Under the pieces are notes generated by a model. The model saw only the letters and a list, made by a program, of their open reading frames with translations, made no database searches and had not been told where the DNA came from. A program made the translations under genes and the position numbers. Source: Trichosphaerium sp. ATCC 40318 (lineage: Eukaryota > Protista > Tubulinea). Taken from it: a stretch of 64,000 bases of DNA. This document shows, one piece after another, positions 8,547 to 64,000 of the stretch. Within the stretch, counting starts at the first letter, position 1. Each line of letters starts with the position of its first letter. The stretch is from contig JALMLS010000071.1 in NCBI GenBank assembly GCA_038496445.1, positions 62,001-126,000 on the forward strand, in the 5' to 3' direction.

Positions 8547-9809
8547 ATGCTTCCTATTACTACGTGTTATAAAATCAACAACATCGCACATGATAATTTG
8601 TTGCGGCTACCTACAGAGATATTAGCGCATATTTTGGTTCAAACAACCACATCACGATTTGCAGCTTGTCAAACATGTCGTATATTTGCTTCTATCATTC
8701 ACGACATTATCGGATACCACGCTATCAGGGTTGAAACTATAAACCAAGTAGAATCAGTTGTAAAACATCGTGGGATTCTGAAAAATACCAGCATAGACCT
8801 TAGCTTTTGTGATTTTGGCGATACCAGCATCACACAATTTGCTGGAGTTCATACTATTTACCTCAATTATACTTCAATAACAGATGAAGGTGTAAAAGCA
8901 CTTGTTGGAGTTCATGCTATTGGCCTTGATAGCACTTTGGTAACTGACGAAGGCATTAAAGCACTTGCTGGAGTTCATACTATTACCCTTAGTTGTACTT
9001 CAGTAACTGATGAAGGTGTAAAAGCACTTGTTGGAGTTCATTTGATTAAACTTAATCGTACCTCAGTAACAGATGAAGGTGTTAAAGCACTTGTTGGAGT
9101 TCATACTATTGGCCTTGATAGCACTTTGGTAACTGATAAAGGCATTAAAGCACTTGCTGGAGTTCATACTATTACCCTTAGTCGTACTTCAGTAACTGAT
9201 GAAGGTGTAAAAGCACTTGTTGGAGTTCATTTGATTAACCTTAATCGTACCTCAGTAACAGATGAAGGTGTAAAGTTGCTTGCTGGAGTTCATACTATTA
9301 CCCTTAGTCGTACTTCAGTAACAGATGAAGGTGTAAAAGCACTTGTTGGAGTTCATACTATTGACCTTGATAGCACTTGGGTAACTGACGAAGGCATTGA
9401 AGCACTTGCTGGAGTTCATACTATTTACCTCAATTATACTTCAATAACAGATGAAGGCATCAAAGCACTTGCTGGAGTTCATACTATTTACCTCAATTAT
9501 ACTTCAATAACAGATGAAGGTGTAAAAGCACTTGCTGGAGTTCATACTATTTACCTCAAGTATACTTCAATAACAGATGAAGGCATCAAAGCACTTGCTG
9601 GAGTTCATACTATTGGCCTTGATAGCACTTTGGTAACTGACAAAGGCATTAAAGCACTTGTTGGAGTTCATACCATTGGCCTTGATCATACCTCAGTGAC
9701 TGATAAAGGCATTAAAGCGCTTGTTGGGACAAAAAAATTATATGCACGTGGCACTTTAGTAACAAATGAAGGAGTTAAAGCTGTAAAAGGAACTCGTGTA
9801 TGGATATAA
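8547..9809 (+). CDS. Intronless F-box + LRR protein (14 x 21-aa repeats)
   Basis: LLRLPTEILAHIL...CQTCRIF F-box-like N-terminus; tandem xGVHTIxLxxTxVTDEGxKAL repeats. Confidence 0.9.
   Translation: MLPITTCYKINNIAHDNLLRLPTEILAHILVQTTTSRFAACQTCRIFASIIHDIIGYHAIRVETINQVESVVKHRGILKNTSIDLSFCDFGDTSITQFAGVHTIYLNYTSITDEGVKALVGVHAIGLDSTLVTDEGIKALAGVHTITLSCTSVTDEGVKALVGVHLIKLNRTSVTDEGVKALVGVHTIGLDSTLVTDKGIKALAGVHTITLSRTSVTDEGVKALVGVHLINLNRTSVTDEGVKLLAGVHTITLSRTSVTDEGVKALVGVHTIDLDSTWVTDEGIEALAGVHTIYLNYTSITDEGIKALAGVHTIYLNYTSITDEGVKALAGVHTIYLKYTSITDEGIKALAGVHTIGLDSTLVTDKGIKALVGVHTIGLDHTSVTDKGIKALVGTKKLYARGTLVTNEGVKAVKGTRVWI
8841..9722 (+). repeat. Coding tandem array of 14 x 63-nt LRR units
   Basis: Constant framework (ggagttcat...gaaggtgtaaaagcactt) with a short variable block in each unit. 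Confidence 0.95.
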
Positions 9810-10989
9810 TTCCAATAAAGTTGCAGTAGATTGAACAAAGGCAAGTAGTAATCAATCAAAAAACTCCTTGCACCCTAACCCACAATCCTTTTTTTCTTTT
9901 GTGTAAAAATTCAGTTTTTGTTCCTTTTGTTCAACATTGCATGAGTGTACCAAAATGTAGAATAAATCTGCTTGTGGCTACACTAGAGCCACTGAAGACA
10001 GGGAGGCTTTCCTCGAAGAGTACCCTTTGATATTGGCCCAATCATAAATAATGTTAAGTTTTAATTGGTACAAGGCTTACAGCATTAAGTTACAAGTTAG
10101 TTTGCAGCCGAAGTTTTGGCTTGCACATAAGTCACTGTAGTATGAGGCTTAGTGCATGCTGATCCTCTAGTACAATGGAAGTGACGCAGGGATTTCCCTT
10201 TACATGGCGTCCTGGCAAACTCGGACCAAAGGTTTGACAGAAATCAAAACGGGCAGGAAACAAAACCGCCCTCGCCCATAGGCTACTGAATCTTCATTAT
10301 ACTGGACGGAGTACCCATATAATATTTGCTAGACTAAGTTAACCCCAGCACTTGTTTAGCAGGCCGTCAATGAGGCAACAAAGCGAACCAGTACTGATTA
10401 CTTTTCATGTGAAGGGATCTCAGGTACCACATTAATTCTACAGCATTGTAGGAGTACACGCCATAATGGCTGAGTTCAAGAAGTGTAAACAATTTCAGTC
10501 TTCCACTTATACCATCTCTATTTATTACATTAATATTTTCAGCACTAGGAAAAATACAACTTTCCATAAACACAATATTTAGCAAACCTCCTCATATGTA
10601 TATATACAATATACAGTAGCAGCATGACATTAACAGTATTGATGACTTTCTCTACTACTATTCTATCTAAGATGGCGAATACAACAATCAATGCTTATAC
10701 AAAAGAGGGTTGAGATTTCGGGTAGAAATAGGCTTCGATGGTACAAAATACACGTGAGGCAAGTTTATTTATAGATTGGTAGCCTTGTCATTTGCTTCAT
10801 TGTATGGAGATACTCTTACTGGAATTGTTTTGATGGACTCTACTACGCCACAGCAGTGCACTAACGAAACTTTTTTGACAAGCCTAGTAAAAATATCTTC
10901 GCATGTGATCTTTTTCGAAGTTTTGCGAGAACATTGTTGACCTTGCTTTGTTCATCGTACTTGATTCGTATTGGGAACAGCTTCGCAGT

Positions 10990-12903
10990 ATGTTGTACAC
11001 AGGTATACTCATAGCTCTTTGCGTTGTATTTGTGGCTTGGCTATTGAAAAATAAAAGCAACATACCTGGACCGACTGGATATCCTTTTATTGGGAGCGTA
11101 TTAAAGCTATCGAAAGATAGTGGACTTGTTCACGAGGTATTTGAAGAGGTACGGTAGAATAAAACTGCGTTTAGATTAACTTCTAAACTCGCTGTAGTGG
11201 CGTCAGTTATACGGTAACGTGTACCAATTTAAAGTGTTTGGAAAGACTTCGATAGTGGTTTCTGATTTTGACGACATCAAGAAAATCTTTCAAGATAAAA
11301 CCTACTTTTGCTCGTCACTTGTTTCAAACGACAAAGTATTAGAGGTATGCTTATATTCAACAATATTGTATACTCTCATCGGTTTCGAAAATATCCATGT
11401 GACTGTGATCTAACAACTGAAATCTGAATTAAGGCTTGCTTCTTCTTTTTTTTTTGTAACCCTTCCTTACCAAACGTTTAATCACGTGATCTTAATCAAA
11501 ATTTTTAGTCGCTCAAACTAGATCGCGCCTTGGGATTCCAACATGGAGATCAATGGAAAGTGATGAGAAAGTTAGTTGCTCCTGAGTTTACAAACAAGTA
11601 TTTAAGTACAAAGTTCGATGGTATTTTACAGGCGCTTGAAGAGAAGATTGACGAAGTAAAGAATCTTGCAAAGGATGGTAAACCTCTGGAAGATCCTTAT
11701 GAATTAGCATCAAGAATAACATTCGGTGTTTTATCTAACATGTTTTTGAAGATTAGTGAGTTTGAAGGTAAGTGGTGTAGCTTTCTTTTCTTTTCTTTTT
11801 GTAAGTTGTCTTTAGAAGATAAACTCAAAAAACGTGAGTTACTGGACACTCTTCAGAAGTTATTGATAGTTCTTATAAGAAGAGGATCTGCCCCAGTAGA
11901 ATATTGGCGTTTACCATTTTTAGTACCTAAGGTAACTACATGAGTCAACACAAAGCGTTCTAATTATAAATAGGAAGAAACAGACTTTTATAATTCGTTG
12001 AGCAAGGTTGTTCTTCCATTTCTAGAACAGGTCTTGCACAAAGCTAAAAACAACTTGAAAGTACCTGGACGCAAACCAGATAATATAATAGAGGTACTTA
12101 TCTACCACAAGTCACTTTGCTAATAAAGATTGTTTGAAGGAAATGTTGCTACAAACAGATAAACAATTTTGGAATAGTGAATGTATCTTATCAAATGTTC
12201 TTGGTCTATATCTTGGAGGTGTAGAGACGACAGCAACTACAATGGTAACAATATTGTTTGCATTATGCAAGCATACAGAGTTTCAGGATATTATTTATAA
12301 CGAGGTTGCACCATTGATGAAGAAAGATGACTTAAATTTCTATGATTTTATGAATAACAAAACACTATCCAACTTTGTCAAAGAAGTCTTGAGACTCTAC
12401 GGACCAGCGATTTTTTTCAATCGCAAAGCAGTTAAAGATTATACATTGAAGTCCAAACACGGGAGTAAGAGTTATTTTCTAAAAGAGGAAAAGAGAAATA
12501 TTTAGTACTAACTGTTTTTGTTTAGCTTATACGATTCCTGCAGGAACTATGGTCCTTCTGAACACCACATCTGGATATCTTAACAATAACATATTTAAAG
12601 AAGCTAATAAATTTAATCCTGATCGATTTAATACAACAGGTACATCGGTAGTATAATTCAATTCTGTTTTTTTCCTTACTTTCTTTTCAAGAAACTTTAC
12701 CGTACTTTGGATTTGGTGGAGGTCCACGTGTTTGTCTAGGAAAGAATCTTGCAATCATAGAATTAGTGATCTACACAGCATTGATTTGCTACAATTTCAA
12801 GGTATCAGAAGCACCTGGATGTCATCTAAAAGACATAAGGTTTGTTTTAAAACCTGCATTGGGAATAGAAGGGCTTTCAGTTCAACTATCAATGCGTGAG
12901 TAA
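10990..12903 (+). CDS. Cytochrome P450, copy 2 (inverted duplicate of copy 1)
   Basis: Same motifs and intron positions as 4424-6333, with near-identical nucleotide sequence. Confidence 0.93.
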
Positions 12904-13522
12904 TAAATTGTTCTAAATAAACACTTGTCAACACCTTATCAACTCTGTCATTCTGAGCATGACATAGCACAAGCCATCATCCCAGCACCTAAGTGTTGTT
13001 AGCAGGATCTAGCAATAGCTTGGTTCAGTATTTTTGTTTGTTTGGTTGAGTTGATACAAAGCTTTGTCAGGCCATGTTGTTCTACTTGTACATTGGTTCC
13101 AGTTGAGAAATTTGTTCTAGTACTGCTAGCCAGAAAACTATCGGCAAGTCAAATTGAGTCTTTAGCTTTTTTGTGAAACTATCAGAAAATGGCAATAGGA
13201 GCAGTTTGAAAACGTTTTACAATGCTGATGGTTTAATGTGTCTACATTAGCCAATGACGTTTTTCAAAAAATCAAAAAACGTGGCTTACAGCACACACTT
13301 GAAATTTGAACCAGCCAATGCAACCTGTTAGTTCTCATTTCCCCAGATTTCAGCCATCTACCAATAACCAAAATACAATCACCCCTTGAACTTAGCTACA
13401 AGTTCATTAAACAAAGCTTATGGTTGTATAGATACACGTGCACTTAACAAAAAAAAACAACACAAGAAAAAAAAAACTTTGTTAGATTCTTGTTTTGTGA
13501 AACAGATTTCGAGTCTATGTGC

Positions 13523-24225: not shown

Positions 24226-24999
24226 TCAGCAGTAGTCGTGTTCAAACCATAAGACACCAGCTACAAAACCGAATCTGTTGTACCCAAGAACGAACGTGAT
24301 GTAACAACGATAGCTCCTAACATTAGCTACATTATATGTATCCTTTACGCTGACATCATCCAGATTACCTGAACAATAGCTCAATGTCTTTGGATCAAGG
24401 CGTGTAACCTTGTCGTAAAAGTTCACTCCTTTCATGCCGATAAGCTTTAGCAAGTTTTGGCCAGATGGAGGATGCTCTTTACTTTGTTCTGATCTCTTGT
24501 GGTTGCTGGTATGTAAAAACCCAACAACTTCGTAGTCTAGACGAAAACCATTGCCGTAAGAGAGCCCTTCCGTTTCCGTGTGTTCAAAGGATAGGTATTC
24601 TTTCAAAGATAATAGTGTGAAAAGCCTCTTTTTACAATCTCCAATATCACTTGAGCATGTTGTGGGGTCTAGAAGAAGAGATGTTTCCTTTGGCACTAAA
24701 ACTCTAAACAACTTTTCTTTACGTGAAGCCAATCGAACCAAGTTATGTTCAAAGTTACTCTCGTAACTAGAGTGGTCTGATATCTCCTTTTTAATCTCAA
24801 TTTGCCATAATTGTATGTAATACGCTATCGTTGCTTGTGCAATGCTTTTACAGATTGTATTTGAGCGAAATGTAAGTGACACAGACAAACAAACGGTAAG
24901 TGCTTCCAGGTCTGTTAATAATACCTTTTTGAGTATCTCTTGTATAATCTCTGGTGGTATTGATCCAAATGAATCAGCTACAGCCTCTTCTTTAGACAT
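24226..24999 (-). CDS. Intronless F-box-like protein with unknown C-terminal domain
   Basis: FGSIPPEIIQEILKKV...CLSVS F-box-like N-terminus; uninterrupted ORF of about 257 aa from the ATG at 24999. Confidence 0.65.
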   Translation of the reverse strand: MSKEEAVADSFGSIPPEIIQEILKKVLLTDLEALTVCLSVSLTFRSNTICKSIAQATIAYYIQLWQIEIKKEISDHSSYESNFEHNLVRLASRKEKLFRVLVPKETSLLLDPTTCSSDIGDCKKRLFTLLSLKEYLSFEHTETEGLSYGNGFRLDYEVVGFLHTSNHKRSEQSKEHPPSGQNLLKLIGMKGVNFYDKVTRLDPKTLSYCSGNLDDVSVKDTYNVANVRSYRCYITFVLGYNRFGFVAGVLWFEHDYC

Positions 25000-25254
25000 C
25001 GTATACGAAATCATGTGACATCGGAATAAAAATAAATTTCGCCGTTTTTCCACGAAAAAACAAAGTAGGACACATGGTTTGAACTAGAGCACTTTGGTCT
25101 TCCATTAGTACTGTTCTAAGGTGGTTGTTTATGTGTCCATTCAAAAAACGTGAACTACTATCTTTTTGCTGTATGAGTTGTAATTTGCATAGTTACAACT
25201 GATACTGTTTAATAACTACGAAATTTAGCAAGTGCTTCCTTTGTCTTGATCTTC

Positions 25255-26043
25255 CTCATAAACTAAGATGTGCTCCATTGAGTGCTTCAATACCACCTTT
25301 GTTTGTGTAATTACAGCCACGAAGATCGATGTCATAAACTCCAGTGAGTGCTTGTATGATTAATAGTGAACTCCTGCAAGTGCTTTAATCCCTTCATCTG
25401 AAATATTCTGACAATAGGTGAGATTAATAGTGTGAACTCCAGCAAGCGCTTTAATGCCTTCATCTGCAAGGTTCCAACAGTCAGTAAGATTAATAGTATG
25501 AACTCCAGCGAGCGCTTTAATGCCTTCATTTGTCACTGAAGTTCTGCTAAGGTCAATAGTATGAACTCCAGCAAGTGCTTCAAGCCCTTCATTTGTACTG
25601 CTGTAATTAAGATTAATACTATGTGCTTTAATAGTTTTACCTGTTATCTTACTACGGCAACTAAGATTAATAGTATGAACTCCTGCAAGTGCTTTAATCC
25701 CTTCATCTGTTAAATGATCACAATGATTAAGATCAATGGTACAAACTCCAGCAAGTGCTTTAATCCCATCATTTGTTACTTACAATGAAGACTAATGGTA
25801 TGAACTCCAGCAAGAATTTTACAAACTTTGCAGGAAAGCAGCTAGCCAAGTCAACCCGTGTATGTTTCAAACAACCTTTGTAAGAAATGAATTTTTTCGC
25901 TCCTGTAGTACTTCTGTGTATCCAACAATATCGTGAATAATAGCTGCAAAGCAACGACAAGTTTGACAAACCGCAAATCGAGCTTTTGTCATAAACAAGA
26001 ACACGAGAGCTAAAATCTCAGTTGGTATATTCAACAGAATCAT
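25255..26043 (-). pseudogene. F-box + LRR pseudogene (paralog of 8547-9809)
   Basis: LLNIPTEILALVF..RFAVCQTCRCFAAIIHDIVGY followed by about 7 AGVHTIxL..TDEGIKAL units broken by several deletions and frameshifts. Confidence 0.85.
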
Positions 26044-26751: not shown

Positions 26752-28330
26752 ATGATTAACAACACGGCTATAACTTGTAACGATAATAATTGTTATGGCG
26801 GTGGGATGTGCTACAAAGGAGAATGTAAATGTTTTTATGGACGCGCTGGTGAATGGTAGCGAAAAAAATGTTGTGTACAATTGTTCTAATATTGTTTTCA
26901 AGGTGCGAGCTTGGCGCTTCGAGTACGTCACGTGACGACTCATTTTTTCTCGAATTAACGGTTCATTTCTCGAAGACGGGTTTGTCTTGGCGTATAATTT
27001 AGTTTTTGGGGTAATATTTGGGATTTTAGGAAGCTATACACTGTACGACGGTTTTTTTTTTTTTGATTGACAACAAAGAATTTTCTTGTATCTATTGATT
27101 TACTGTTTTAGGTACTGTATTATTCGCTTCAATATTTATAAACCTCCGTATACCAGTAACTCGATGACTATAAAAATGTTATGGCTTTTTATTTTCTTCG
27201 TATGCGTTGGTGAGTAGTAATACGTTTAGAATTCACCTCTAGTTTGTCATTTTGTCGTTTTTTTATTTGGGGTTTTCGTTTACCCAAAACCCGTAAAAAA
27301 TCTTATTCGAGCGATCAAAACGCACGTGTGCTTTTGTGTACTAACTTGTTAAGGAAATTTTTGCTCTGCTGTTTTTGATCCTTTTAATACAAGGAATATT
27401 TCTTCAATTGTACAGATGTTGTTTGAAAGAGCCACTAAAGCTGTCTTCTTTTCCGTACCAATATTTGTCTTGAGATTATGGTAACTAAAAACAACACACT
27501 TGAAATCTGAGCGATGCTTATTTTAGAGTAGGGCACTTATAGAGCCTAGACCAGGTAAATTTATGAGGTTTTTCACATCTGTATTGTCATGTATATTAGT
27601 AGGAGGCACGTTATTCCCATTTTCTTCGTGTTGATTTATGTTTTTTGTTAGCTCTGTTTCTTGTTGAGTTGCTCTTTTTTGTGCTGTATGCATGTATCAG
27701 AGGAGATGCCTTGGCACCTATTTGGATAATAGAAAACGTCTATTCATTGTTGTCATTTATAATTCTATTTGGAAGCTTGATTTGCATGGGCTTCAAAACA
27801 AGAAGTACATTAAGTGTTAGCAAAGATGCTTTCAGAGAATTGCGGAAAAAAGTACGTGCTAAGTAGCTCCCCCGCAATACTTTATTGTTGTTCCCTTACT
27901 ACTGTTGATTCGTTTGCAGTCTTGGGAATAGTGATATTGAGTGAACAGCGAAGGAATGTTGAGTGGGGCTCAAAACAGTTTCTTTTTGAAAAGGACTCAC
28001 TTTGTGGTAGATACATATCCTTGTATTGGTTTCCATATCCGTTTTCTTTATTGTGTTTATCACGCTTGTACCAATGACAATTCTATTTCTAGTCAAGTTT
28101 ACAGCTGAAAAAGCAGAACGTGTCACTGCAAGTGTTGTTTTTAGAATTATATTAAACCTTACAGAGTGCATTCTTATCATTGGTTTTATTGTAACAAAGA
28201 CACCAAGTAGTCGGAGAACTACAAGTGAAACGTGTATGTACCCTAAAAATAGTCTTAATTATATTGACTCGATGCTTAGAAGTCTCAAATCCGCGGGAAA
28301 TCATTGGCAAATCAACATGTGCTTCAATAA
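26752..28330 (+). CDS. EGF-like + multi-TM (GPCR/THH1-TOM1-like) membrane protein, copy 1
   Basis: CNDNNCYGGGMCYKGECKCFYGRAGEWC followed by several hydrophobic exons; paralog at 45378-46929. Confidence 0.7.
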
Positions 28331-28669: not shown

Positions 28670-29254
28670 TCATAAATCGGCTTCTTCACCATCCGACCAC
28701 TCTTCTAAGTTTTTTGATCCGTCTTCATGCCAAGCATGATAATAACACACAATGTGGTCATTCTTGTAAACGCATTTCGTCATCAGTTGTCCGTTGTCAT
28801 GCCACTCGACATAGTCACCATTCATCACTCCAAATGTACAAGTATAAACACATTTGCGTTCACCATTAAAATGCCACGACTTGAACTGGCCATTGAGACC
28901 TGAACGAACATAGTTTGCAGTCCAAGCTAAAGTTCCATTTGGATACCATTCATTAGCCTCTCCTTCAACCAAGCCTTCTTTGTAGAAACGCACAATTGCA
29001 ACTTTTCCATTCGGATGATATTTTGTGCTTTTGCCATGCGGTTTACCGTTCTTGTAGTTCTGTAGATGCTTATATGTCGCTTGTGGACCACTTTTTAGCC
29101 AAGCGCCACTCTTTTCGAAGTCTTCGTTAAACCGTGTTGTTGTAGCTGCTAATTTGCAAAGCAATGGCCATTTTAAGTAGATTTCACGGTCAGTATTTAA
29201 TATCAAGTGTTGTAGCTCCAGAGGGAGTACGGTTAATATTGTTGCCTCTGTCAT
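28670..29254 (-). CDS. Intronless F-box-like + MORN-variant repeat protein
   Basis: LTVLPLELQHLIL..YLKWPLLCK; repeats YkNGxxhGxxxxWyxNG. Confidence 0.85.
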   Translation of the reverse strand: MTEATILTVLPLELQHLILNTDREIYLKWPLLCKLAATTTRFNEDFEKSGAWLKSGPQATYKHLQNYKNGKPHGKSTKYHPNGKVAIVRFYKEGLVEGEANEWYPNGTLAWTANYVRSGLNGQFKSWHFNGERKCVYTCTFGVMNGDYVEWHDNGQLMTKCVYKNDHIVCYYHAWHEDGSKNLEEWSDGEEADL

Positions 29255-31232: not shown

Positions 31233-32156
31233 TTAATTTCTATTCATAAATAACTGTGTATATTTGATACCCAATGATTCAGTAATCTCCTCCGTTATCT
31301 GGTTATCTCCCTTAAAAAAGTACACATACATACCTTTGAGAGATACCAGATACCTCAAGCAATCATTTGTTATCTTACCAGAACAAGAACAGGCGGTGAG
31401 GTTCTCAAGATTGATCATACCTTTAAACACTGAGTCTGTTATTTCACAGCAATTAAGGAATAAGCCTTTGACATTGATCAATGCTTTGAGTCCTTTTCCT
31501 GCTGTTAATTTTGTATCATTTATGCTAACAGTGTGGATATTAGCAAGATGTTCAAGCCATGATTCTTTTGGATTATCAATTTCAAGTTGATGAACATTTC
31601 TGAGTGCCTTTACCCAATCAATTGTAACATTAGAACACCCACTAATACTTATTGAACTTGCATCGCTAAGTTCCTGTATTCCCTTAATAGTAATATTCCT
31701 ACACGGACCTAAGTCTATACTGTGCACACCCTTTAGAGCCTTCAATGAAACATCTGTTATATCTGAATTGTGAAGGCGTATATAGTGAATGTTATGCCCT
31801 CCTGATGTCAATGCAATGATATCATCATCTGTTGCGTTATTCAAGAAGATGGTGCGAACGCCATGAAGGCAAGCAATGTCTCTTTCAGTTAGAGAAATAT
31901 CAGAGCTGAATGTAAATGCTGTGCTTCTTAATAGCGGACTGCCTTTAAATAAGCGACATTCATATGACGCCTTTAGTTGTAGGTGACCGAATCCAATATT
32001 GGTGCGAATAATGTCATTAAATAACTTAGAAACAGCTGTAGCTGTTATACAGTCGCTTCTGTTTAAAAACTGTAGAATATGCGTTAAACTCTCTGGTGGT
32101 AGCTCTTGAATACCACAGTTAACGTTCCGTACTTGTATAACACGTTTTAAAGACAT
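31233..32156 (-). CDS. Intronless F-box + divergent LRR protein
   Basis: IQELPPESLTHILQFL...VSKLFNDIIRTNIGF; repeats ITDVSLKALKGVHSIDL. Confidence 0.85.
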   Translation of the reverse strand: MSLKRVIQVRNVNCGIQELPPESLTHILQFLNRSDCITATAVSKLFNDIIRTNIGFGHLQLKASYECRLFKGSPLLRSTAFTFSSDISLTERDIACLHGVRTIFLNNATDDDIIALTSGGHNIHYIRLHNSDITDVSLKALKGVHSIDLGPCRNITIKGIQELSDASSISISGCSNVTIDWVKALRNVHQLEIDNPKESWLEHLANIHTVSINDTKLTAGKGLKALINVKGLFLNCCEITDSVFKGMINLENLTACSCSGKITNDCLRYLVSLKGMYVYFFKGDNQITEEITESLGIKYTQLFMNRN

Positions 32157-32376
32157 GCTTGGGTGCAATTGCTTGTTGAAGCGAACAATACTTAAACGTG
32201 AGATTAAGTTAGTCAAAAAATAATGAAAACTGTGGCTGTCGTGGCTTCGAAGATAAAGCCACTTAAGCATGCGGTCCAGTTATAACTCGTTACTCACACC
32301 AGCCACTTCATTTTGCTACACTTAAAGAACTCAGTTTGTTATCAACAAACTAATATTGTTTTTATTACAAGTAACT

Positions 32377-35496: not shown

Positions 35497-36339
35497 TGGC
35501 CACACCTCTGCAGGTAGCGACCCTTATAACACTGTGTTGCGCTCTAAAGTTGTAATAGATCACAAGAGACACAGCATCAGCCAAATGCCCTCTATTGCTT
35601 ACCTTTTGAGCTACAGCTAGATATTGTTGAACTAGACCATGAAGTGTATGTAAAGTATCCCCTTTTATCAAAACAAACGGCAACAAGCACGAGGTTTGAT
35701 AACATGTTTAATAAACACGGCAAATGGATAAAAAGACAGAGTTTAAACATCACACCTGCACAAAAAAGATACCTTTGGTTTGGGACGCAGAATGTCATGC
35801 CATCGACAGAGTGTTTTTACAGACATGGTAAACTACATGGAGAAGCTAGGGCGTGGGAAAGGGGTTTATTGGTAAAACAATGTTGGTATGTTGATGGTAA
35901 ACTTGATGGAGAGTATCGGAAGTGGAATCCTAGTGGCAAGTTGGAGCTACAACGTAATTATGTCAAAGGAAAATTATCAGGAGCATATAAGAGATGGTTT
36001 GAGAGTGGCTTATTGCAAGAACACCGTCATTACACCAATGGTATCGAAGATGGAGAAATTACACTATGGTACCATAATGGCCAATTGTGTAGACAAGCTA
36101 CCTATGTGAATGGTAAGTACGAAGGAGAGTACAAGTCGTGGTATGATAACTCGCAATTGTATCAACAAGGTTATTACATAAATGGTAAACTAGATGGAGA
36201 GTACTGGGAGTGGCACAAAAACGGGAATAAACGGATGAAGCGCAATTTTGTCAAAGGTGAACTTCAAGGAGATTACAAGCAGTGGCATACAAATGGCAGA
36301 GAAATGGATAGGTATCATGCTAACCCAGTGTTCTATTGA
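35497..36339 (+). CDS. F-box-like + MORN-variant repeat protein (short first exon)
   Basis: LYCLPFELQLDIVELD..YVKYPLLSK; about 7 MORN-type repeats. Confidence 0.85.
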
Positions 36340-36671
36340 GAACGATATGTAATGAACAAAGTAAGGCTTTTATGTTGTGACGTGTACAAGTATAATAACT
36401 TGGGTATGCCTTAATTCCGTACCTGGCGTACAGTATGTGAGAAAAATATGTATTGGATGTGTACCCAATAAATCTTCAAGCAGTATCAGTCTTGTAAAAG
36501 AACAACACTTGCACATAGAAAAGCAAAAATGAGACATTTTTGGACAATAATATCAACCACAAGGGGAATGAAATTACAGTCACGCCGAGATAAGCTTTTG
36601 TAGACAAGGAAAAAAAGTCACGTGCACTGCGACTTAACTTTCTAGTTCACAACGTGCCACTAACCGTCGCA

Positions 36672-40916: not shown

Positions 40917-41881
40917 CTATGCATAGTAGTATTTTTTATGTATCCTGTAGAATTTATCATCGCGGGGCTTGACTACCCAATAGCGGTCACTCAATTCACC
41001 ATCAACGTAATTTCTTTTGTGAATAAGTCGTCCGTTAAAGTCCCAAACCTCGTCTGACCTCTCACCGGTTAATTGCCTTGAAAACTTTAGTTGCCCATTT
41101 TTATACCATCTCTTGTGAACGTCTGGTGTTTTGTGTAGCTTAATTTGTCCGTTTGGATACCACTCTTCAAATATACTGAAGTCCACGTGCTCTTTCGGTT
41201 GTATGTCTGTAAATACTTTTTTTTTGTAGGAAGTTATTTGTCCGTTAGTGTATTGCTCCTCTTCCTCAACGGTACCCATGTTAAAAAGTAACCGTGTCTT
41301 CCGTTGACCGACTTTATTTTTGTATATCCATTCACCATGTTTCTTAAATTGTACCCTCATGCCTTGTACCCGTGTGTGTCCATTCGAGTATTTCTCAGTA
41401 TACGAACCATTTTTGCGCCCGTCTTCATAGAACTCATGTATTGTAATACGCCCTGAACCTGAAGCTACGTATTTTTGTTCGCCATCAAGGACTCCATGTT
41501 TGTAAGTTCTTAGGTGTTGCTGATATCCTCCAAATTCTGTTTGTGCTCCATGAAGCTTTCCATTGTTGTCAAACGATTTTCTTCGAAGAAGGAACACCTC
41601 GCTTGTTCCACTACGTCGCCATGCCTTCCATTTGCCAATTTGTTTCAACCGCAATGAGTAGTGAGTCATCATGGCCGCTCTTCGTGATAGAACATGCCTG
41701 AAAAAGTATCAGTCTGATGGTAATTCCAAGTAAACAAAAATAGTCACCATTTTGAGTGTGTAGTGCGGTCCATCTCACAGATATATTGTTGTATTTCAGG
41801 TGGTAGTGACAACACCATAGAACCATCATCACAAGGAATGGATGTTAATTTTTTTGTGGGTACACGTGGTATAAAAAACAT
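40917..41881 (-). CDS. F-box-like + MORN-variant repeat protein, with an intron at 41698-41747
   Basis: VLSLPPEIQQYICEMD..HSKW|HVLSRRAAMMTHY; splicing restores the family motif shared with the other MORN genes. Confidence 0.8.
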
Positions 41882-42361: not shown

Positions 42362-42450
42362 CTTAGGAACGTGTACCCAATGCCTGTACAGCTTCTTTTG
42401 TTATACTCGTTTTGCTATTGACATGAATATACTTGATGTACTTCATACAA
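42362..42450 (-). pseudogene. Remnant of an LRR C-terminal cap
   Basis: IKYIHVNSKTSITKEAVQALGTRS resembles the end of 8547-9809 (VTNEGVKAVKGTRV). Confidence 0.35.
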
Positions 42451-43099
42451 GAGTCATACAATCCAAAAGTGCAAGAAGAATAAGTGTTTGTGAAACCAAA
42501 TTACAGTATTCGTAATGGTTCACCATGACGGTTTTTAATGTTGTCTCCATTGCCCGTATTTTCTGTGGTTTAAGAACATGGAAAGGTATGTAGCTCCAAA
42601 CTTAGGAAGGTTGGAGTACAGAATTGATACTATGAACTTTAATAAATTATGAAGGTATTGCATACAATTAATATAATTTAAACTATGAAGGTATAAATTA
42701 TTGCACATAATTAATCTTTAGGTGTACCATGAGCACCTATCATGTAAAAATTCTGAACTGATCTCAATGCCCAAAACCTGTATTGGATGCGGCAAAGCTA
42801 TGTAATGATCCCTGAAATAATAACTGACTAAGACCGTACAACTAGAACTTTGAATGAAAATAAACCAAACAAAATCACATTATTATCTTAGAATAGTAAA
42901 ATAATAAATGGTTTCCAATAATAGATACTCCTCGTTGCTTACCATTTTGCTTGAGTAAAGTAAGTTACCCAAAACGGTTATTACTTTGAATGACTGTTTT
43001 ACTGGGGATGTGGAGGAGTCATGATTCCTTGGCAAAACGATAAATTCCTTAGATAACACAAAGAAGACCCAATTTTTGCTACAAAATAGAACAGTTTAT

Positions 43100-44522
43100 T
43101 TATTCCTTGTAACATTGTAACGCTTTGATGACTTTGATACGTTCAGACAAACTGAAACCGATCTCTATGAGTGCATCCATATCAATTTCTGAAATTTTGG
43201 CACGTGCTACATTCATAAGTGATCCAAGCTCTTGTGCTCGTTTACTTTCAAAGCCCAATCTAATTAATTCCAACTCCCAATCTGTTACTGACTGTTGCAC
43301 TGAGTCATTTTGAGTATTAGTGAAACTTTCCTACATAAAAAGGTAAATCATTTCTATGTACCAATTCTAAAGAGTACCTCATTGATGTCAGAAACAGTAG
43401 GCTTGCTACTCCATGAATTTTGAGATATAAGTTCCTCAATTGAATTTGTCTTTGACAAAATATCAATGGCATCTTGAAGTATATGATAATCTTCAAGAGC
43501 ATCTCCAAACTTTTTGTACTCATATTCAGGATCAGCTACAAGCTTTGGTAAGTACTTTTCTCCTGGGCTCTCTTTCAATATCGAATGTAGATGTTTTGTA
43601 TCTACTTTATTTGGTGTTGTCAAATCATTTTTATCTCTACCACTCATAGGTTCAACCGTTGGAGTTACATTGCTCTTTGCTTCCTTAAGGGGGGCAGGTA
43701 TTAATTTACCCTCTTTGATTTTTTTGCCATCTTTGAATTCACAAAGAATTTTACTTCCGTCCTGGAAATTTTATCACTCCTTCTCCATGGTACTTATTGT
43801 CTTTAAAATTGCCAATATAAACTACCCCATCTTGTGTTATGGACTCTCCTAAGCCATGAAATTTGCCATTTTTATATTCACCTGAATGCACAACCCCACT
43901 TGGCGTAGTTGTTTTCCCATCACCATGTAGTTTACCATCTTTAAACACCAACCATTTTAGTTCCATCAGAGAAGTGCACTTCTCCTACGCCTTCTAAGAA
44001 GCCCTTGTTGAATTTGCCAATACAAACAGTTCCATTTGGTAGTATCATCTTGCCTAGACCATGGGGTTTCCCATCTTTAATTCTGCCAATAAATCTACTT
44101 CTGTCTGGTAATAGCCGCACTCCTTTGAATGTAAGTTGTTGGGGTTTGCACTCTTGCTCCGCGTCTGTAATGTCAGGTGTTAAAACCAGTGATACACTGC
44201 TAATCACTCCATTGTTGATTTCACAACTATATGTCGTTCCATCAGATTGTGTTAAAAGTGCTTTGCCGTGGATCTCGCCTTCTTTAAATTCACCTGTATA
44301 TTTATTTCCATTCGGCATTGCTATTGTTGCGCTACCACTTCGGGACCCCTTGTTGAAGTTTCCAGTATATATAGTTCCATCTGTAAATATCATCTCTCCT
44401 TCACCATGGGGTAAGCCATTTTTAATTCCGCCAATATATCTAGTTCCGTCTTGAAATATCCACTCTCTGGGGCGTTTGCTCGCACCTGTATTTTCACCAA
44501 CATATTTGGTTGTTTCTGCCAT
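43100..44522 (-). pseudogene. Classical MORN-repeat protein with SAM-like C-terminus, frameshifted
   Basis: YxGxFxxGxxHGxG repeats spread over three frames (shifts near 43943 and 43762); C-terminal IDMDALIEIGFSLSERIKVIKAL. Confidence 0.75.
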
Positions 44523-46929: not shown

Positions 46930-47169
46930 CGTCTTTGAATCTTGAGAACTTCAAAGACTTAGTCACTGCCTAACAAATTATAATTTTTGCAAGTACATAA
47001 ACACTCATTGTATTGGTGGTGAAGACAGTAATTTTTTAATTACATGATAGCACTATGCAATGACCTTTACTACTCTCAAACAATTACAGCCAGCTTTTGG
47101 AACTTGGAACACTACAAACCGAGACACAAAAACAAAGTGCGAAAACGCATTTACTTCATACAATTCAAT

Positions 47170-47373
47170 TTGATTCCACTGATGTAACAGATGAAGATGT
47201 TAAAGTATTGAAAGGTGCGCTCAAATCAACGTATTTCATTGCGAAATAACAGATGAAAGCATTAAATCATTGGCAGGTGCTTATTCTATTTGTGTAAGCT
47301 ATTGTGAGCACGTGACATACGAAAGCCTTGCAGTTTTGAAAAGTGTTCACTCTTTACGATTGTGGTACATCTA
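47170..47373 (+). pseudogene. LRR remnant
   Basis: TDVTDEDVKVLKGA / CEITDESIKSLAGAYSICVSYCEHVTYESLAVLKSVHSL, with a frameshift. Confidence 0.65.
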
Positions 47374-47593
47374 GCAGGTATACTATCAAGTCACTACAAG
47401 ATGCCTCAGTCCAGGTTCTGGGAGAATATTAGATAGGCCACAGTCTTGGTTAGAAACTGCATTATTCTAAACAATAAATAGTTACAATCACATTTTTCTT
47501 ATTCATTAAAGACTACCACTGAAATCTGTGAACAGAATGTCAAATAAAATGGTTAAGTTCAGTTTTAAGTAGAATCAACAAAGAACGCCACCA

Positions 47594-47932
47594 ATGCAAA
47601 TAAAAATAAAAACACTAACAGGAAAGGATATAATGATTGAACTGGAGCCAAGTGACACTATTGAAAACGTAAAAGTAAAAATCGAAGACCAAGAAGGTGC
47701 AAAAACAAGATTAAACGCTCTAATCAAGTAAAATAATACATTTGTAGGTATTCCAACTGACCAACAGAGACTTATCTTTGCTGGGAAGAGACTAGAGGAT
47801 TGCAAGACTTTAGCGCATTATAAAGTAGAAGATGGTTCTATGTTACACCTTGTGCTACGACTTAGAGGGGATAGCGGTAGTCATGGTCAGGTCAAGGACG
47901 TCCAGAACAACACTACCTGTCGTTTAATGTAG
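47594..47932 (+). CDS. Ubiquitin/NEDD8-like variant A with RGD tail and CaaX-like end
   Basis: [34 protein letters not shown]|[18 protein letters not shown]...[29 protein letters not shown]; one 51-nt intron. Confidence 0.88.
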
Positions 47933-50421: not shown

Positions 50422-51110
50422 TAACGATCATAGGCTGCTATGCAGTACCTAATCATAGTTTATATAGAGCTTTTCCCTAACGGCAGAACTCACCTCTATA
50501 TCGGACCTTATAATTTTCTTGGCCCAGACCGAGTTCCTAAGTTAATTACGTGCTACTTACGAGGACATGCTGGCTAATGTAACGATTCAAGCTTTCACAC
50601 TACGTCGGATTAAGATGGAACTTTTCACAATTCCACCTCGCAATGCATACACCCACTAAGCTAGACGGAGGACTCCCTTAAATTGTTTTCGACCAAATGG
50701 CTAGGAAGCCCCACGCGTGGTGCACACACTGCAACTACTACAATTTACTCAATATTTTCGTTTCTTTTTATACCCATAAAAACTAGTGAGAAATAAATTG
50801 TGGGATACAGAGCGTACTTCACTGAAAATTCTATTGCAATTACTCAAATATGGATAATGCACATTTCAAAACGCTCTTAAAGGCTTGCGCTTGCTAGTTA
50901 CAAGTGTGAAAACCGTATCAGCGAAGTTTTGGTTCAAAAAACGTGCAACTAATCGAGAACTTCTTTTTCTGGTTGTATTGTCGATACACTTCACTAAATC
51001 TAATTTAAGTACTCAAAAACGGATAATACGTATTTAAACACGCTCATACAGGTCTGTGGTAGCTAGTTACTTGTGTGGAAACCTTATCGGCGATGTTTTG
51101 GTTCACAAAA
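50422..51110. repeat. Non-coding module A, left copy (inverted copy at 61541-62235)
   Basis: Near-identical reverse complement of the right copy; includes a GC-richer 330-nt block and two diverged units of about 170 bp. Confidence 0.9.
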
Positions 51111-51822
51111 CGTGACACGATGTATGTTGTGTACCCAATAAAAACGCAAGTAAAGGTCTGGATTAGAAAGTTGTCACAAATGGAATTCGGTTAGTAAGGC
51201 TTCGTGTGTATTTATTGAGCGTACATAAACACAATAAAGTACCTAACATTCAAGTGTGTTGGTGACTTTTACAGGTTTCAACAGAGTACGTAGTTTAATG
51301 AACGAATTTAAAAACAGTTGCAGTTATCACCGTTGGCATGGCTATGTTGTTGTAGGTTTTAGTGTAAACAGTATTTTACCCAGCTCTATGCAACCAATTT
51401 GAACCAAAGTCACAACTTAAGGGAGCATAGTATTAGAGAAACACTGAGTACCATCCAAACAACGGTAGTAATTCTTAAAAGGTCAAAGTATAATAAACGG
51501 TAGGCCACTCTCATATCAAATTCATGCTTTTTGCAAAGCCCACACTGGTGTTATAGAAGATGCTACAACCAAGATAGTTTGTAACTGTAAAGTTCAGTGA
51601 CTGGACCATTGTCAAATGTTTGAAGGAACTGCTTATGTTGATAGCAAGTCACCTAAAGCGGCTATTCCTTAAATGTATTAATTGTCTACACGTGTTTTTT
51701 TATGTTACTTAATACTGGTATTTATTGTATCATAAGGATTAAGACGTACATACAAACTCGTATAGCCTGTTGTACCCTAATTAGGTCATCGCTATACTCA
51801 CAAGTATTAAATAGTATTTAAA

Positions 51823-52450
51823 ATGGGCGCACGACAATCAACAACACCTGAGGTAATTAGTTTATGCCAAATGATGTACTTAAACCAAGCATAGGACATA
51901 ATTTCTGAAGCAGAGCAATCTTGCCACCTACTACACCTTCCAGTGGAGCTACACCTTATTATCACAGAGCTAGATGTTCAAGTTTATATCACGTGGGCAC
52001 TCTTATCCAAGCGCACAGCAAGAACAAGATTTGATTCTGATCTTAACAAACATGGCATGTGGCTGAAAACAAGAAGAGTAACCAGAGCTATACCACCTTA
52101 CGTAATCTCAAAACTAAAAATCATAGAGAGAGGATATTGGAAACATGGTCAACGTCATGGCGAGTCTACTTGTTATTTTAACAATGGGAAACTGGGATTA
52201 CAAAGAACTTTTGTTGATGGAAAACAAGAGGGAGAATGCAAGGAGTGGTATGATAACGGTCAATTAGCAAGCTTGCGGTATTATGTCAATGGTGAGGTTG
52301 AAGGACAGTACAAGAGATGGCACTCTAATGGTAAATGGTACTTTTAAAAAAGGTCAGCGCCACGGAGAGCAAAAAAAATGGGATTTTAATGGTGAATTAC
52401 ATGGGCATGTGCTGTATATAAATGATGTACTTCAAACAACAATAATATAA
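51823..52450 (+). pseudogene. MGARQS (myristoylation-like) F-box + MORN gene with an 11-nt deletion
   Basis: MGARQSTTPE|DII..LLHLPVELHLII..YITWALLSK; lacks gtcagcaatgt near 52339 relative to the 63.6-kb copy. Confidence 0.8.
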
Positions 52451-52956
52451 AATAAGAGTGTACTTCCTTGACCAAGGTGTCCTCCAAAAAGCTTTCTCTG
52501 TGTCACTAATACAAAAGAATCATTCAATTTTTCAACTTGTATGGAAAATTTAGCAGGGCGTCCTACTTTTGGACCTTTTTAAGTAACTTTGTTAACATAT
52601 TTGCCGATAGTGTCCTATTTGTGCAACAACAGTGCATTAACCACAGCTTTACACCACCGAAACCTGTGAACAGAATGTTAGAATAACTGTTGACAACTAA
52701 TACGCAATTGTTTGGGAGAAAACACAACGTCTTAGTGACTATCAATAGCACACTGATGTCGTGTATATTTGTTACATAAAACACCACAGCGCACTCGTGC
52801 GAATTATATTATATTCAGTAAAGATATGAATTTCAAGGTTGAGCTTAGGTCTCACGAATTCAAACGCCAGCTGAAATGATTGACATACTCATTCATCAAT
52901 CAAAAAAAAAAAGTGTTAAGTTTAGTTTTAAGTAGAACCAACAAAGAACGCCACCA

Positions 52957-53060
52957 ATGAAGATAAAAATAAAAACACTACCAGGAAATGATATAATAAT
53001 TGAACTGGAGCCAAGTGACACTATTGAAAACGTAAAAGTAAAAATCGAATTCAAAGAAGG
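52957..53060 (+). pseudogene. Ubiquitin variant B, exon 1 only
   Basis: [34 protein letters not shown], then joined to a copy of 51510-51668 instead of the intron and exon 2. Confidence 0.8.
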
Positions 53061-53296
53061 TACCATGACATTTTCATATCAAATTCACACTTTTTGCAAA
53101 GCCCACACTGTAGAAGATGTTACAACCACGATTGTTATTTTCTCTTTGTAATTGTAAAGAACTTTACATTCAGTGACTAGACCATTGTCAAATGTTTGAA
53201 GGAACAGGTTAAGTTGATAGCAAGTCACCTAAAGCGGCTATTCAAAATATATTTCCCTTTGGTGACAGCAAAAAATAGAACAGTTTATTAATTCGT

Positions 53297-53895
53297 TCAC
53301 ACATTGTTACGCTTAGCTTTGATGACTTTGATACGTTCAGACAAACTGAAACCGATCTCTATGAGTGCATCCATATCAATTTCTGAAATTTTGGCACGTG
53401 CTTCATTCATAAGTGATCCAAGCTCTTGTGCTCGGTTATTGTCAAAGCCCAATCTCACCAATTCCAACTCCCAATCTGGTACTGACTGTTGCACTGAGTC
53501 ATTTTGAGTATTAGTGAAACTTTCCTACACAAGAGATGTAAATCAGTTCTATGGATCAATTCTAAAGAGTACCTCATTGATGTCAGAAACAGTAGGCTTA
53601 TTACTCCATGAATTTTGAGATATAAGTTCAGAAATATTCTTGCTTTACCATGGAACACCCCTTTTTTAAATTCGCCACTAAATTCAGCGCCGCTTGACAT
53701 AATTGCTCGCCCTGTGGCGTGTAACGTGCCTTCTGAAATTCCGCCAGTGTATTTAGAACAATCCGACAATATCATATCTACTTCACCAGTGAGTTTGCCA
53801 TCCTTACTTTCGCCATCTACAACAAAGGAGCTTAGTAAACCAAAACTGGCCCTACAAATATAGACATAACTACCATATGTATCAGTTCCTACCAC
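53297..53895 (-). pseudogene. MORN-SAM-like remnant; 3' part duplicates 43085-43430
   Basis: Direct duplicate of the SAM-like exon fused to different MORN repeats; the intron donor is mutated. Confidence 0.7.
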
Positions 53896-59363: not shown

Positions 59364-61168
<1,805 letters not shown>

Positions 61169-61540: not shown

Positions 61541-62235
61541 GAACCAAAACATTACCGATAAGGTTTCCACACAAGTAAATAGCTACCACAGACCTGTATG
61601 AGCGTGTTTAAATACGTATTATTCGTTTTTGAGTACTTAAATTAGATTTAGTGAGTGTATCGACAATACAACCAGAAAAAGAAGTTCTCGATTAGTTGCA
61701 CGTTTTTTGAACCAAAACTTCGCTGCTACGGTTTTCACACTTGTAACTAGCTTGCACAAGCCTTTAAGAACGTTTTGAAATGTGCATTATCCATATTTGA
61801 GTAATTAAAATAGAAATTTCAGTGAAGTAACCTTCTAGAAGCTTCTATTAATACCACAATTTATTTCTGATTAGTTTTTATGGGTATAAAAAGAAACGAA
61901 AATATTGAGTAAATTGTAGTAGTTGCAGTGTGTGCACCACGCGTGGGGCTTCCTAGCCATTTGGTCGAAAACAATTTAAGGGAGTCCTCCGTCTAGCTTA
62001 GTGGGTGTATGCATTGCGAGGTGGATCCGCGAAAAGTTCCATCTTAATCCGACGTAGTGTGAAAGCTTGAATCGTTACATTAGCCAGCATGTCCTCGTAA
62101 GTAGCACGTAATTAACTTAGGAACTCGGTCTGGGCCAAGAAAATTATAAGGTCCAATACAGAGGTGAGTTCTGCCGTTAGGGAAAAGCTCTATATAAACT
62201 ATGATTAGGTACTGCATAGCAGCCTATGATCGTTC
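61541..62235. repeat. Non-coding module A, right copy
   Basis: Reverse complement of 50422-51110. Confidence 0.9.
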
Positions 62236-62542
62236 TTTTTGATACTTGGCTTTCATCAGGTTTTGCACTATAAACTTGTTTACAAAAGATTACAAAACAA
62301 CATCAAAACAGCGTAGTATGGTAAGAAGTCTGCGATAGTTACACTTTAGGCAACAGAAATTGACTGATGTGATTGAATTAGAATTCCCGTCTTCTTTAAC
62401 GCACCATTGTTCTTCCCTGTCTTTCAAATTCAGAGACTGCTGCGTGTCGCCAAATGTACGAGGGTAAGGTAGTCAAGTTGTATACTATTTATTATGTCTT
62501 TCGTGTCATGAGTGCATTGATTGATTTAATCAACTTTCCGCC

Positions 62543-62812
62543 TTACATTCGTATCTGAAGGAATAATATAGAACCATCTTCTACTTTATAATGCGCTAAA
62601 GTCTTGCTATCCTCTAGTTCCTTCTCAGCAAAGATAATTCTTTGTAGGTTATTTGGAATACCTACAAATGTATTAATTTACTTGATTAGAGTGTTTAATC
62701 TTGTTTTTGCACCTTCTTTGAAGTCGATTTTTACTTTTACGTTTTCAATAGTGTCACTTGGCTCCAGTTCAATTATTATCTCCCCTGTTATTGATTTTAT
62801 TGTTATCTTCAT
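62543..62812 (-). CDS. Ubiquitin variant C, intact ORF with no GG tail
   Basis: [33 protein letters not shown]|[39 protein letters not shown]. Confidence 0.8.
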
Positions 62813-63519
62813 TGGTGGCGTTCTTTGTTGATTCTACTTAAAACTAAACTTAAGGGCAGTTATCCCAATCAGTGAAGGCTATTTGGCCTAATTACCATTC
62901 TGTTAACAGTAATTTAAACACAAAAACAGCCTTAGATCCTAATCAGTGAACGCTATTTGGCCTAATTACTGTTACAATAATGTCTCAACAGTGGTCCTCT
63001 AATTTAATTAAATGCACTCGGGAGTCCCATTCTTTTTATCAAAATATGCTGATTTTTTATTTTTGCTGGATTTATGCTTAGCGGCCACCTAATTTTTCAA
63101 ATAAAAACTTACTGGTGGATTGTTACTCCAGAGCCAATTTCTTATCCCACCATGTTGGTTAGAGTGAAAATAACCTTGATTGTAAAAATCACTGAGATGA
63201 GTGTCAATCATTTCAGCCGGTGTTTGAATTCGTGAGACCGAAGCTCAACCTTGAAATTCATATCTTTACTGAATGTAATTTGCACAACTGCGCTTTGGTG
63301 TTTTATGTACAAATATACACGACATCAGCGCGCTATTGATAGTCACTAAGACGTTGTCTTTCCTCCAAACAATCACGTTTAGCCTGTCGTAACAGTTATT
63401 CTAGCATTCTGTTCACAGGTTTCGGTGGTGTAATGCTGTGGCTAATGCACTGTTGTTGCACAAATAGGACACTATCGGCTAATATGTTAACAAAGTTACT
63501 TAAAAAGGAAGTACACTCA

Positions 63520-64000
63520 TTTATATTATTGTTGTTTTTAGTACATCGTTTATATACAGCGTGCTCATGTAATTCACCATTAAAATCCCAGCTCTTTTGC
63601 TCTCCGTGGCGCTTACCTTTTTTAAAAGTACATTGCTGACACCATTTACCATTAGAGTGCCATCTCTTGTACTGTCCTTCAAGCTCACCATTGACATAAT
63701 ACCGCAAGCTTGCTAGTTGACCGTTATCATACCACTCCTTGCATTCTCCCTCTTGTTTTCCATCAACAAAAGTTCTTTGTAATCCCAGTTTCCCGTTCAA
63801 GTAGACTCTCCATGACGTTGACCATGTTTCCAATATCCTCTCTCTATGATTTTTAGTTTTGAGATTACATAAGGTGGTATAGCTCTGGTTACTCTTCTTG
63901 TTTTCAGCCACATGCCGTGTTTGTTAAGATCAGAATCAAATCTTGTTCTTGCTGTGTGCTTGGATAAGAGTGCCCACGTGATATAAACTTGAACATCTAG
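63520..64000 (-). pseudogene. F-box + MORN gene (inverted copy of 51823), 10-nt deletion; runs off the window
   Basis: Reverse complement of 51969-52450; lacks ttattttaac near 63798. Confidence 0.78.

Follow-up and report, generated by a model that had tools for sequence, protein, structure and literature searches.

Two repeat families, probably long resident and decaying, and ubiquitin copies lacking Gly-Gly in a 64-kb stretch of the Trichosphaerium genome

We analysed 64,000 nucleotides of Trichosphaerium sp. ATCC 40318 (contig JALMLS010000071.1, positions 62,001 to 126,000 of the forward strand; hereafter the window), in which genes for F-box proteins with leucine-rich repeats (LRRs) and genes for proteins with variant MORN repeats (MORN_2) lie among host genes together with ubiquitin-like elements. 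The two gene sets are probably dispersed, lineage-expanded repeat families that have long been part of this intron-rich host genome and are now decaying, and the ubiquitin elements were probably co-duplicated with them and would not be their functional partners. Most likely, the families are host-encoded or long domesticated and are shared with giant viruses, and the ubiquitin copies, all of which lack the terminal Gly-Gly, form a side family that is decaying or possibly diversifying. The original prediction for this DNA had proposed a birth-and-death repertoire of ubiquitin-ligase receptors, either a cell-autonomous defence in which receptors are paired with ubiquitin modulators or a set of captured viral effectors.

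The density of family genes in the window is clearly above chance, because the loci are real paralogues. About five loci look intact, a term that refers here to the open reading frame (ORF) only; for three of the five this requires the removal by splicing of a putative intron of 42-67 nt. Three loci (25255, 51823 and 63520, as named in the original prediction) are frameshifted. Birth-and-death turnover, as had been proposed, is borne out by local duplications of 90-95% identity, private frameshifts, fragments and tandem expansion of repeat cassettes. The LRR-type loci are as follows.

8547..9809, plus strand: F-box-LRR gene, intact, single exon, 420 aa (Pfam, TRF, AlphaFold, Foldseek)
31233..32270, minus strand: F-box-LRR gene, intact, diverged from its paralogue 8547 and irregular in its LRRs (Pfam, tblastn)
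25363..26043, minus strand: F-box-LRR pseudogene with about six LRR units, the 25255 of the original prediction (DNA read directly)
8135..8212, plus strand: remnant with about 1.2 LRR units, a short way upstream of 8547 (tblastn with the 8547 protein, 58-64% identity, E 2e-6)
47154..47368, plus strand: LRR remnant of about four units with a frameshift and without an F-box, 226 bp upstream of ubiquitin variant A (tblastn, E 3e-7, two frames)

An F-box is recognisable by profile at all three LRR-type loci for which one had been claimed (8547, 31233 and 25255, the last of them broken). In the 8547 protein it occupies residues 18-55 (Pfam F-box-like, 24.9 bits against a cut-off of 24.3) and is followed by repeats matching LRR_6 at E 3.5e-34. 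The 31233 protein matches both F-box (28.0 bits) and F-box-like (28.1 bits) and was related to 8547 by tblastn at E 1e-19. At 25255 the F-box is kept, with 50% identity to that of 8547, and the LRR piece is 67% identical to 8547 by protein alignment; in-frame stops and a 1-nt frameshift separate the two parts. An intron was considered as a rescue of this frame, and no GT-AG intron of plausible size was found to remove the stops and the frameshift. Two of the three LRR remnants that had been reported were recovered (8135-8212 and 47154-47368, E 1e-6 to 1e-7); the third, at 42362, is a single degenerate unit with E of about 5 and was treated as a chance match.

The repeat array of 8547 (positions 8839-9727) was found by Tandem Repeats Finder (TRF) to have a period of 63 nt (21 aa) and 14.1 tandem copies with 80% matches. 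Its 21-aa unit carries a near-invariant scaffold, GVHTI..L..T.VTD.G.KAL, and variation among the 14 repeats is concentrated at unit positions 8, 10 and 11, which are the x positions of the LxLxx strand. An AlphaFold model built with 12 aligned sequences had a predicted local distance difference test score (pLDDT) of 89.9, with the solenoid part above 90, and comprised three short helices (residues 23-35, 37-43 and 45-55) right after the motif LPTEIL and then a regular solenoid. Foldseek matched this model to ribonuclease inhibitor, FBXL2-SKP1, COI1-ASK1, TIR1, RipG4 and LegL1. The LRR_6 match, the solenoid model and the Foldseek results thus all identify a C-terminal repeat domain of the substrate-binding kind.

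By its N-terminal F-box above the Pfam cut-offs and its predicted fold, in which a three-helix F-box leads into an LRR solenoid, with FBXL2-SKP1, COI1-ASK1 and TIR1 among the structural matches, the LRR type of the window resembles the FBXL family of substrate receptors (Skp2, FBXL2, TIR1 and COI1) of the Skp1-cullin-F-box (SCF) ubiquitin ligases. FBXL proteins have longer, cysteine-containing LRRs. Unlike them, the window LRR type has a unit of 21 aa with the near-invariant GVHTI scaffold, the 8547 array has arisen recently from a few cassette types that expanded in tandem, and Skp1 binding is predicted only. By homology, the F-box-LRR proteins would dock on Skp1 through the F-box, and the concave LRR face would bind substrates and present them to the SCF ligase; the LRR type may in this way act as an SCF substrate receptor. 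The window itself contains no gene for Skp1.

The second family comprises five loci with MORN_2 repeats (PF07661) and a common N-terminal module, here termed the LPxEL module.

28670..29254, minus strand: MORN_2 gene, intact, single exon, 194 aa, with the LPxEL module (Pfam MORN_2, E 3e-12)
35497..36339, plus strand: MORN_2 gene with an ATG plus six codons, a putative GT-AG intron of 55-67 nt and a frame open from 35548 (DNA read directly; Pfam MORN_2, E 1e-16)
40917..41818, minus strand: MORN_2 gene with exon 1 at 41818-41748, a putative 50-nt GT-AG intron at 41747-41698 and exon 2 at 41697-40917 (DNA read directly)
51823..52700, plus strand: MORN_2 pseudogene with a 10-codon exon 1, a clean 42-nt GT-AG intron at 51853-51894, the LPxEL module and MORN repeats (DNA read directly)
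63399..64000, minus strand: MORN_2 pseudogene, the 63520 of the original prediction, an inverted duplicate of 51823 with its 5' end beyond the window (self-BLAST, pairwise alignment)

The repeats were recognised by Pfam at four of these loci with E values of 3e-12 to 1e-16 and weakly at 40917 (E 0.05), a locus that tblastn related to 35644 at E 4e-13. At 35497 the open frame from 35548 spans the LPxEL module and about seven MORN_2 repeats. AlphaFold modelled the repeats as a beta-hairpin array with pLDDT above 90, and Foldseek matched the array to MORN1, SET7/9 and radial-spoke MORN proteins; the MORN_2 type thus carries tandem MORN-variant repeats of the hairpin-array form. The consensus of the N-terminal module is LPxEL ... 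Y.KW.LLSK.TA..TRFD...NKHG.W.K. At 40917 the putative intron lies inside this module, and splicing restores the family consensus, so that the module aligns with the other three; a reading of this module as disrupted was rejected on account of the clean 50-nt GT-AG intron in the DNA.

Putative introns thus interrupt three otherwise single-exon MORN_2 genes (at 51853-51894, 35515-35569 and 41698-41747), two of them before the LPxEL motif and one, that at 41698-41747, after the KW of the module. The positions in 51823 and 35497 hence differ from that in 40917, which points to gain or loss of introns within the family. Both pseudogenes are frameshifted independently: pairwise alignment of the two copies placed an 11-bp deletion near 52338 in 51823, and the copy at 63399-64000 has a private 10-bp deletion near 63797. 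Introns were also considered as a rescue for these two frameshifts and were rejected, as the candidates here and at 25255 were either 22-34 nt long or without GT-AG ends.

Five MORN-type F-box genes had been claimed for this DNA. The MORN_2 loci do lie at the places named, but their N-terminal module is a candidate F-box that profile and fold comparisons did not support. No Pfam match to the LPxEL module was obtained at E<=10, and no match was found when a profile of the module was searched against the PDB. Comparison by hhalign with the F-boxes of the LRR type gave probabilities of 0.2-2.3% over 10-14 columns around LPxE, from a shallow profile of four sequences, and LPxE[LI] is the only motif that the module and those F-boxes have in common. 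The AlphaFold model of the module is one long helix with pLDDT of 48-82. Searches of viral contigs, of metagenome contigs and of the protein database with the module alone recovered no relatives. In favour of an F-box, the ESM Atlas clusters nearest the MORN type are from giant viruses, with an F-box beside MORN_2 in 10-19% of members, and the viral MORN_2 ORFs L002 and L003 have F-box-like starts. With the whole MORN-type protein, a word-indexed search gave one weak match and a full HMMER search gave 17,916, mostly long MORN_2 proteins; because such proteins dominate these matches, they are uninformative on the N-terminal module.

A further ORF had been listed as an F-box gene of another type.

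24226..25053, minus strand: ORF of 275 aa with the motif IPPEII, candidate F-box (Pfam, sub-threshold)

The ORF is present, but its F-box-like match (13.5 bits, E 0.064) falls under the 24.3 cut-off, and its best ESM Atlas score of 0.82 provides a lead only; no paralogue of it was found within the window. Of the at least nine intron-poor F-box-like genes that had been proposed, the loci are therefore real and correctly placed, and an F-box is supported for the three LRR-type loci only.

The setting of these loci is that of a host chromosome. The GC content is 37% along the whole 64-kb window, and readable introns are 42-67 nt long. Multi-exon host genes sit among the family members, as had been stated, namely those for NAPRTase, a ricin-B lectin and an SPRY protein, together with two multi-exon cytochrome P450 copies and a GT31-like glycosyltransferase gene that were recognised by eye from translations; a gene for a classical-MORN protein is also present. 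In the published draft genome of Trichosphaerium sp. the GC content is 37.69%, and genes have 8.7 introns each with a mean length of 75 nt; this draft contains about 1,570 giant-virus-like gene models that are dispersed among host genes and have F-box and MORN as their top domains (PMC10521059). The window agrees with this draft in GC content, intron richness and F-box/MORN dispersal (PMC10521059).

Relatives of both families were found in giant viruses, and relatives of the LRR type also in protists. When viral contigs were scanned with the single protein 8547, no match was obtained. A scan based on an alignment then detected, on the contig L021, an ORF at 1983-2624 (213 aa) that opens with LPxEI and carries GVHTI repeats like those of 8547, at 45-58% identity and E 2e-52. 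This contig is 102 kb long with a GC content of 0.27, and next to the ORF are a NUDIX gene and a gene whose product has an mRNA-capping-enzyme domain. Two other candidates, L022 and L023, were rejected as relatives of 8547, since they encode generic LRR proteins. Viral MORN_2 relatives were 28-49% identical to the MORN-type loci, and for both families the nearest ESM Atlas clusters were Nucleocytoviricota with the same domain sets.

The best protein-database matches of the LRR type, at 34-48% identity, were MMETSP transcripts and JGI records (P0152, P0154, P0155, P0157 and P0163, of which P0152 and P0154 are MMETSP transcripts and P0155 is a JGI protein). Matches among protist transcripts indicate that marine protists, including at least one amoeba, transcribe the LRR family. 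An F-box/linker signature, RF..AQ[TS]C...IIHD[IV]VGY, is common to the window copies, P0152, P0154 and P0155, and is shown only loosely by the viral L021 protein. A transcript of the amoebozoan Clydonella (P0193) shares the GVHTI repeats and has the signature only loosely. In P0152, P0154 and P0155 the F-box is preceded by a further conserved domain, N-terminal and about 100 aa long (MNF..[VI].QA..YY..); the window copies are without it.

The giant-virus connection made by the original prediction therefore holds, in that L021 encodes an F-box-LRR protein with the GVHTI repeat and the nearest ESM Atlas clusters are Nucleocytoviricota. A stronger view, in which the genes are fragments of recently integrated giant-virus DNA and the F-box-LRR and MORN proteins are viral host-manipulation effectors now in decay, is unlikely. 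Besides the close structural and sequence homologue on L021, this view can draw on the scarcity or absence of introns, on the several broken copies and on the interpretation of such Trichosphaerium genes as giant-virus transfers (PMC10521059). The closest viral sequences nevertheless reach just 45-58% identity with the LRR type and 28-49% with the MORN type, and the N-terminal module of the latter has no relative in viral contigs. The family genes have a GC content of 0.37-0.41, equal to host exons and well above the 0.27 of L021, and they have putative spliceosomal introns at positions that differ among paralogues. Multi-exon host genes lie between the copies, and no viral hallmark gene was noticed among the window ORFs of at least 120 aa, a survey that did not include an exhaustive viral-profile scan; a contiguous block with viral composition and hallmark genes, as expected of an endogenous viral element, was not found. 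Marine-protist transcripts, of which at least one is amoebal, moreover carry the F-box signature, which the viral protein shows only loosely. The host-like GC content, the putative introns and the scattering between host genes all speak for a long stay of the families in the host, and a recent capture of the family genes from a virus appears unlikely from their sequence.

In terms of known systems, the giant-virus F-box-LRR and MORN_2 families have the same domain architectures as the window copies, and the giant-virus-like models of Trichosphaerium share with them the dispersal among host genes, the genome GC and the intron-rich context (PMC10521059). The window copies differ from the viral families in their host-like GC and apparently own introns, in an F-box signature that matches protist transcripts more fully than the viral ORF, and in an LPxEL module not found in viral contigs. 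F-box/LRR effectors of amoeba-associated bacteria (Parachlamydiaceae, Ralstonia GALA/RipG and Legionella LegL1) likewise have short LRRs after an F-box and form expanded families, as documented for the Parachlamydiaceae (PMC4209131), and the LRR domains of RipG4 and LegL1 were among the Foldseek matches of 8547. By contrast to these effectors, the window genes are part of a eukaryotic chromosome, where their neighbours are spliced host genes, have no secretion signal or bacterial context, and have eukaryotic transcripts and a giant-virus contig as their relatives.

Exactly three ubiquitin-like loci are present in the window, with ATGs at 47594 (plus), 52957 (plus) and 62812 (minus), and two of them lie within one inverted duplication.

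47594..47932, plus strand: ubiquitin variant A, 95 aa, with exon 1 at 47594-47696, a 51-nt intron at 47697-47747 and exon 2 at 47748-47932
52916..53061, plus strand: ubiquitin variant B, a fragment, with its ATG at 52957
62543..62812, minus strand: ubiquitin variant C, 72 aa, with exon 1 at 62812-62713, a 51-nt intron at 62712-62662 and exon 2 at 62661-62543
50423..53061 (arm 1) and 64000-61541 (arm 2): inverted segmental duplication, rearranged, 90-94% identity (self-BLAST)

They share a ubiquitin unit of about 310 bp that begins 42 nt upstream of the ATG and has its 51-nt intron in codon 35. Variant A matches 54 of the 76 ubiquitin positions and carries G76D, so that it ends in RGD and a 19-aa tail instead of Gly-Gly. 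Variant C matches 40 of 76 positions, among its changes L8I, H68F and V70Q, and stops after residue 72 without the RLRGG tail. Variant B ceases to resemble A and C at the junction of exon 1 and the intron, with exon 1 kept and only scraps of exon 2. None of the three thus has the C-terminal Gly75-Gly76, without which A, B and C cannot be conjugated. A viral origin of these variants was considered and rejected, as their best viral and metagenomic matches (65-76% over 40 residues) were no better than those to ordinary ubiquitin.

The arrangement described in the original prediction was confirmed: all three loci are co-oriented with, and 226-587 bp downstream of, a repeat gene or its remnant. The LRR fragment without an F-box precedes variant A, and the two frameshifted MORN copies precede B and C; no intact receptor in the window has a ubiquitin-like neighbour. 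The inverted duplication carries a MORN gene together with a ubiquitin element, and B and C lie inside its two arms, within a stretch from 42 to 64 kb that is a patchwork of duplications. Because B and C come from one duplication, the window holds at most two independent receptor-ubiquitin contexts.

Under the reading that we favour, of long-resident and decaying host families with co-duplicated ubiquitin elements, both families would evolve via tandem cassette duplication, local segmental duplication, rearrangement and decay, and the MORN-variant family joins its conserved LPxEL N-terminal module to the MORN_2 beta-hairpin array. The ubiquitin elements would be a small local family of Gly-Gly-less ubiquitin derivatives, copied as the unit of about 310 bp, and they would adjoin receptor copies through co-duplication in the rearrangement-prone stretch of about 42-64 kb and not through joint function.

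Several observations weigh against this reading. The chance of two co-oriented placements within 600 bp downstream is about 0.003, a nominal, rough and post hoc figure (the square of 11 elements x 600 bp divided by 128 kb of strand) for which the elements and the distance were picked afterwards. The 35 differences between A and C (47552-47866 versus 62543-62854) are clustered, not uniform (spacing variance, p=0.004): they fall at ubiquitin positions 2-14, 31-33, 38-53 and 66-76, the DNA of positions 15-30 and 54-65 does not differ at all, and the long identical tracts include the intron. Nonsynonymous divergence between A and C, at 0.149 per site, exceeds that of synonymous sites, intron and 5' flank combined, at 0.054 (Fisher p=0.01); on coding sites alone the nonsynonymous (dN) and synonymous (dS) values are 0.166 and 0.082, a difference that is not significant (p=0.34). 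The pattern fits either selection acting on the Ile44 face or patchy gene conversion by paralogues outside the sequence seen here, and does not fit uniform neutral decay. In addition, the MORN_2 introns were deduced from DNA alone, the single-base frameshift of 25255 could be an assembly error if the assembly is a long-read one, and transfer between viruses and host may have run in either direction.

In the pairing proposed originally, the window would hold a diversifying, cell-autonomous defence repertoire of SCF receptors whose variable LRR and MORN proteins work together with adjacent ubiquitin variants that modulate the ubiquitin pathway. We regard this as distinctly improbable. The co-oriented placement of three of three ubiquitin loci, an A/C dN/dS of about 2 (with p=0.01 when nonsynonymous sites are set against synonymous plus non-coding sites), A/C differences that include L8, H68 and V70 of the Ile44 binding face, and the location of the variable LRR positions on the concave strand are all in its favour. 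Yet each receptor next to a ubiquitin element is dead, being either the LRR fragment without an F-box or one of the two frameshifted MORN copies, and the intact receptors of the window are without such a neighbour. Variant B is a fragment, C is truncated and both come from one duplication; the dN/dS excess has p=0.34 on coding sites alone, and adjacency is cheap at such a density of receptors. With all three variants lacking Gly-Gly, their partners dead and at most two independent contexts, the pairing of receptors with ubiquitin modulators is not supported. Nothing in the window supports a role in defence either.

Engineered ubiquitin variants bind and inhibit enzymes of the ubiquitin system, and the surfaces randomised in them are those of strands 1-2, residues 42-49 and residues 66-73. 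The same three surfaces hold most of the A/C differences, and both A and C are of ubiquitin type, by 54/76 and 40/76 positions; by contrast to ubiquitin itself, A, B and C are without the Gly-Gly end, C is truncated and B is a fragment. There is a slim chance that the Gly-Gly-less copies are diversifying, non-conjugatable ubiquitin variants that would act as decoys or inhibitors of host or giant-virus ubiquitin enzymes, with an Ile44 face changing by selection or cassette-like conversion and with co-amplification alongside SCF-type receptors in rearrangement-prone islands. If true genome-wide, such variants would be a natural counterpart of the engineered ones; the present evidence is insufficient for this.

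That expansions of F-box, LRR and MORN genes are common to amoebae and giant viruses is already known, and these expansions are functionally unexplored. The locus-level detail added here is of two kinds: putative introns whose positions differ among paralogues, host-like composition and a protist-shared F-box signature, which favour long residence over fresh viral insertion, and an LRR array in 8547 whose variation is confined to three strand positions.

Further duplications were observed around the family genes. An inverted duplication of 2.1 kb (4311-6423 versus 10902-13014, 95% identity) carries the multi-exon cytochrome P450 genes, and the 4.5 kb between its arms hold the intact F-box-LRR gene 8547 together with an LRR remnant and the QueC-like gene. 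Inverted paralogues of a gene for a multi-pass membrane protein lie at 26769-28228 and 46918-45475, with 66-74% DNA identity; one adjoins the MORN gene 28670 and the other the LRR remnant 47154. In the rearranged stretch, a second duplicated gene family is represented by 43083-43434 and 53272-53629, which are 92% identical duplicates of the 3' part of a minus-strand host gene and adjoin classical-MORN (PF02493) ORFs at 43941-44522 and 53455-53895.

Among single neighbouring genes, the MORN gene 35497-36339 has the ricin-B lectin exons (36654-37142; Pfam, E 5e-7) as its immediate downstream neighbours. A minus-strand ORF of 284 aa at 32657-33511 has a Thr/Pro-rich stretch and no Pfam match, and is followed by a short ORF at 32377-32613 with a hydrophobic, transmembrane-looking stretch; the product of the 284-aa ORF may be a mucin-like surface protein.

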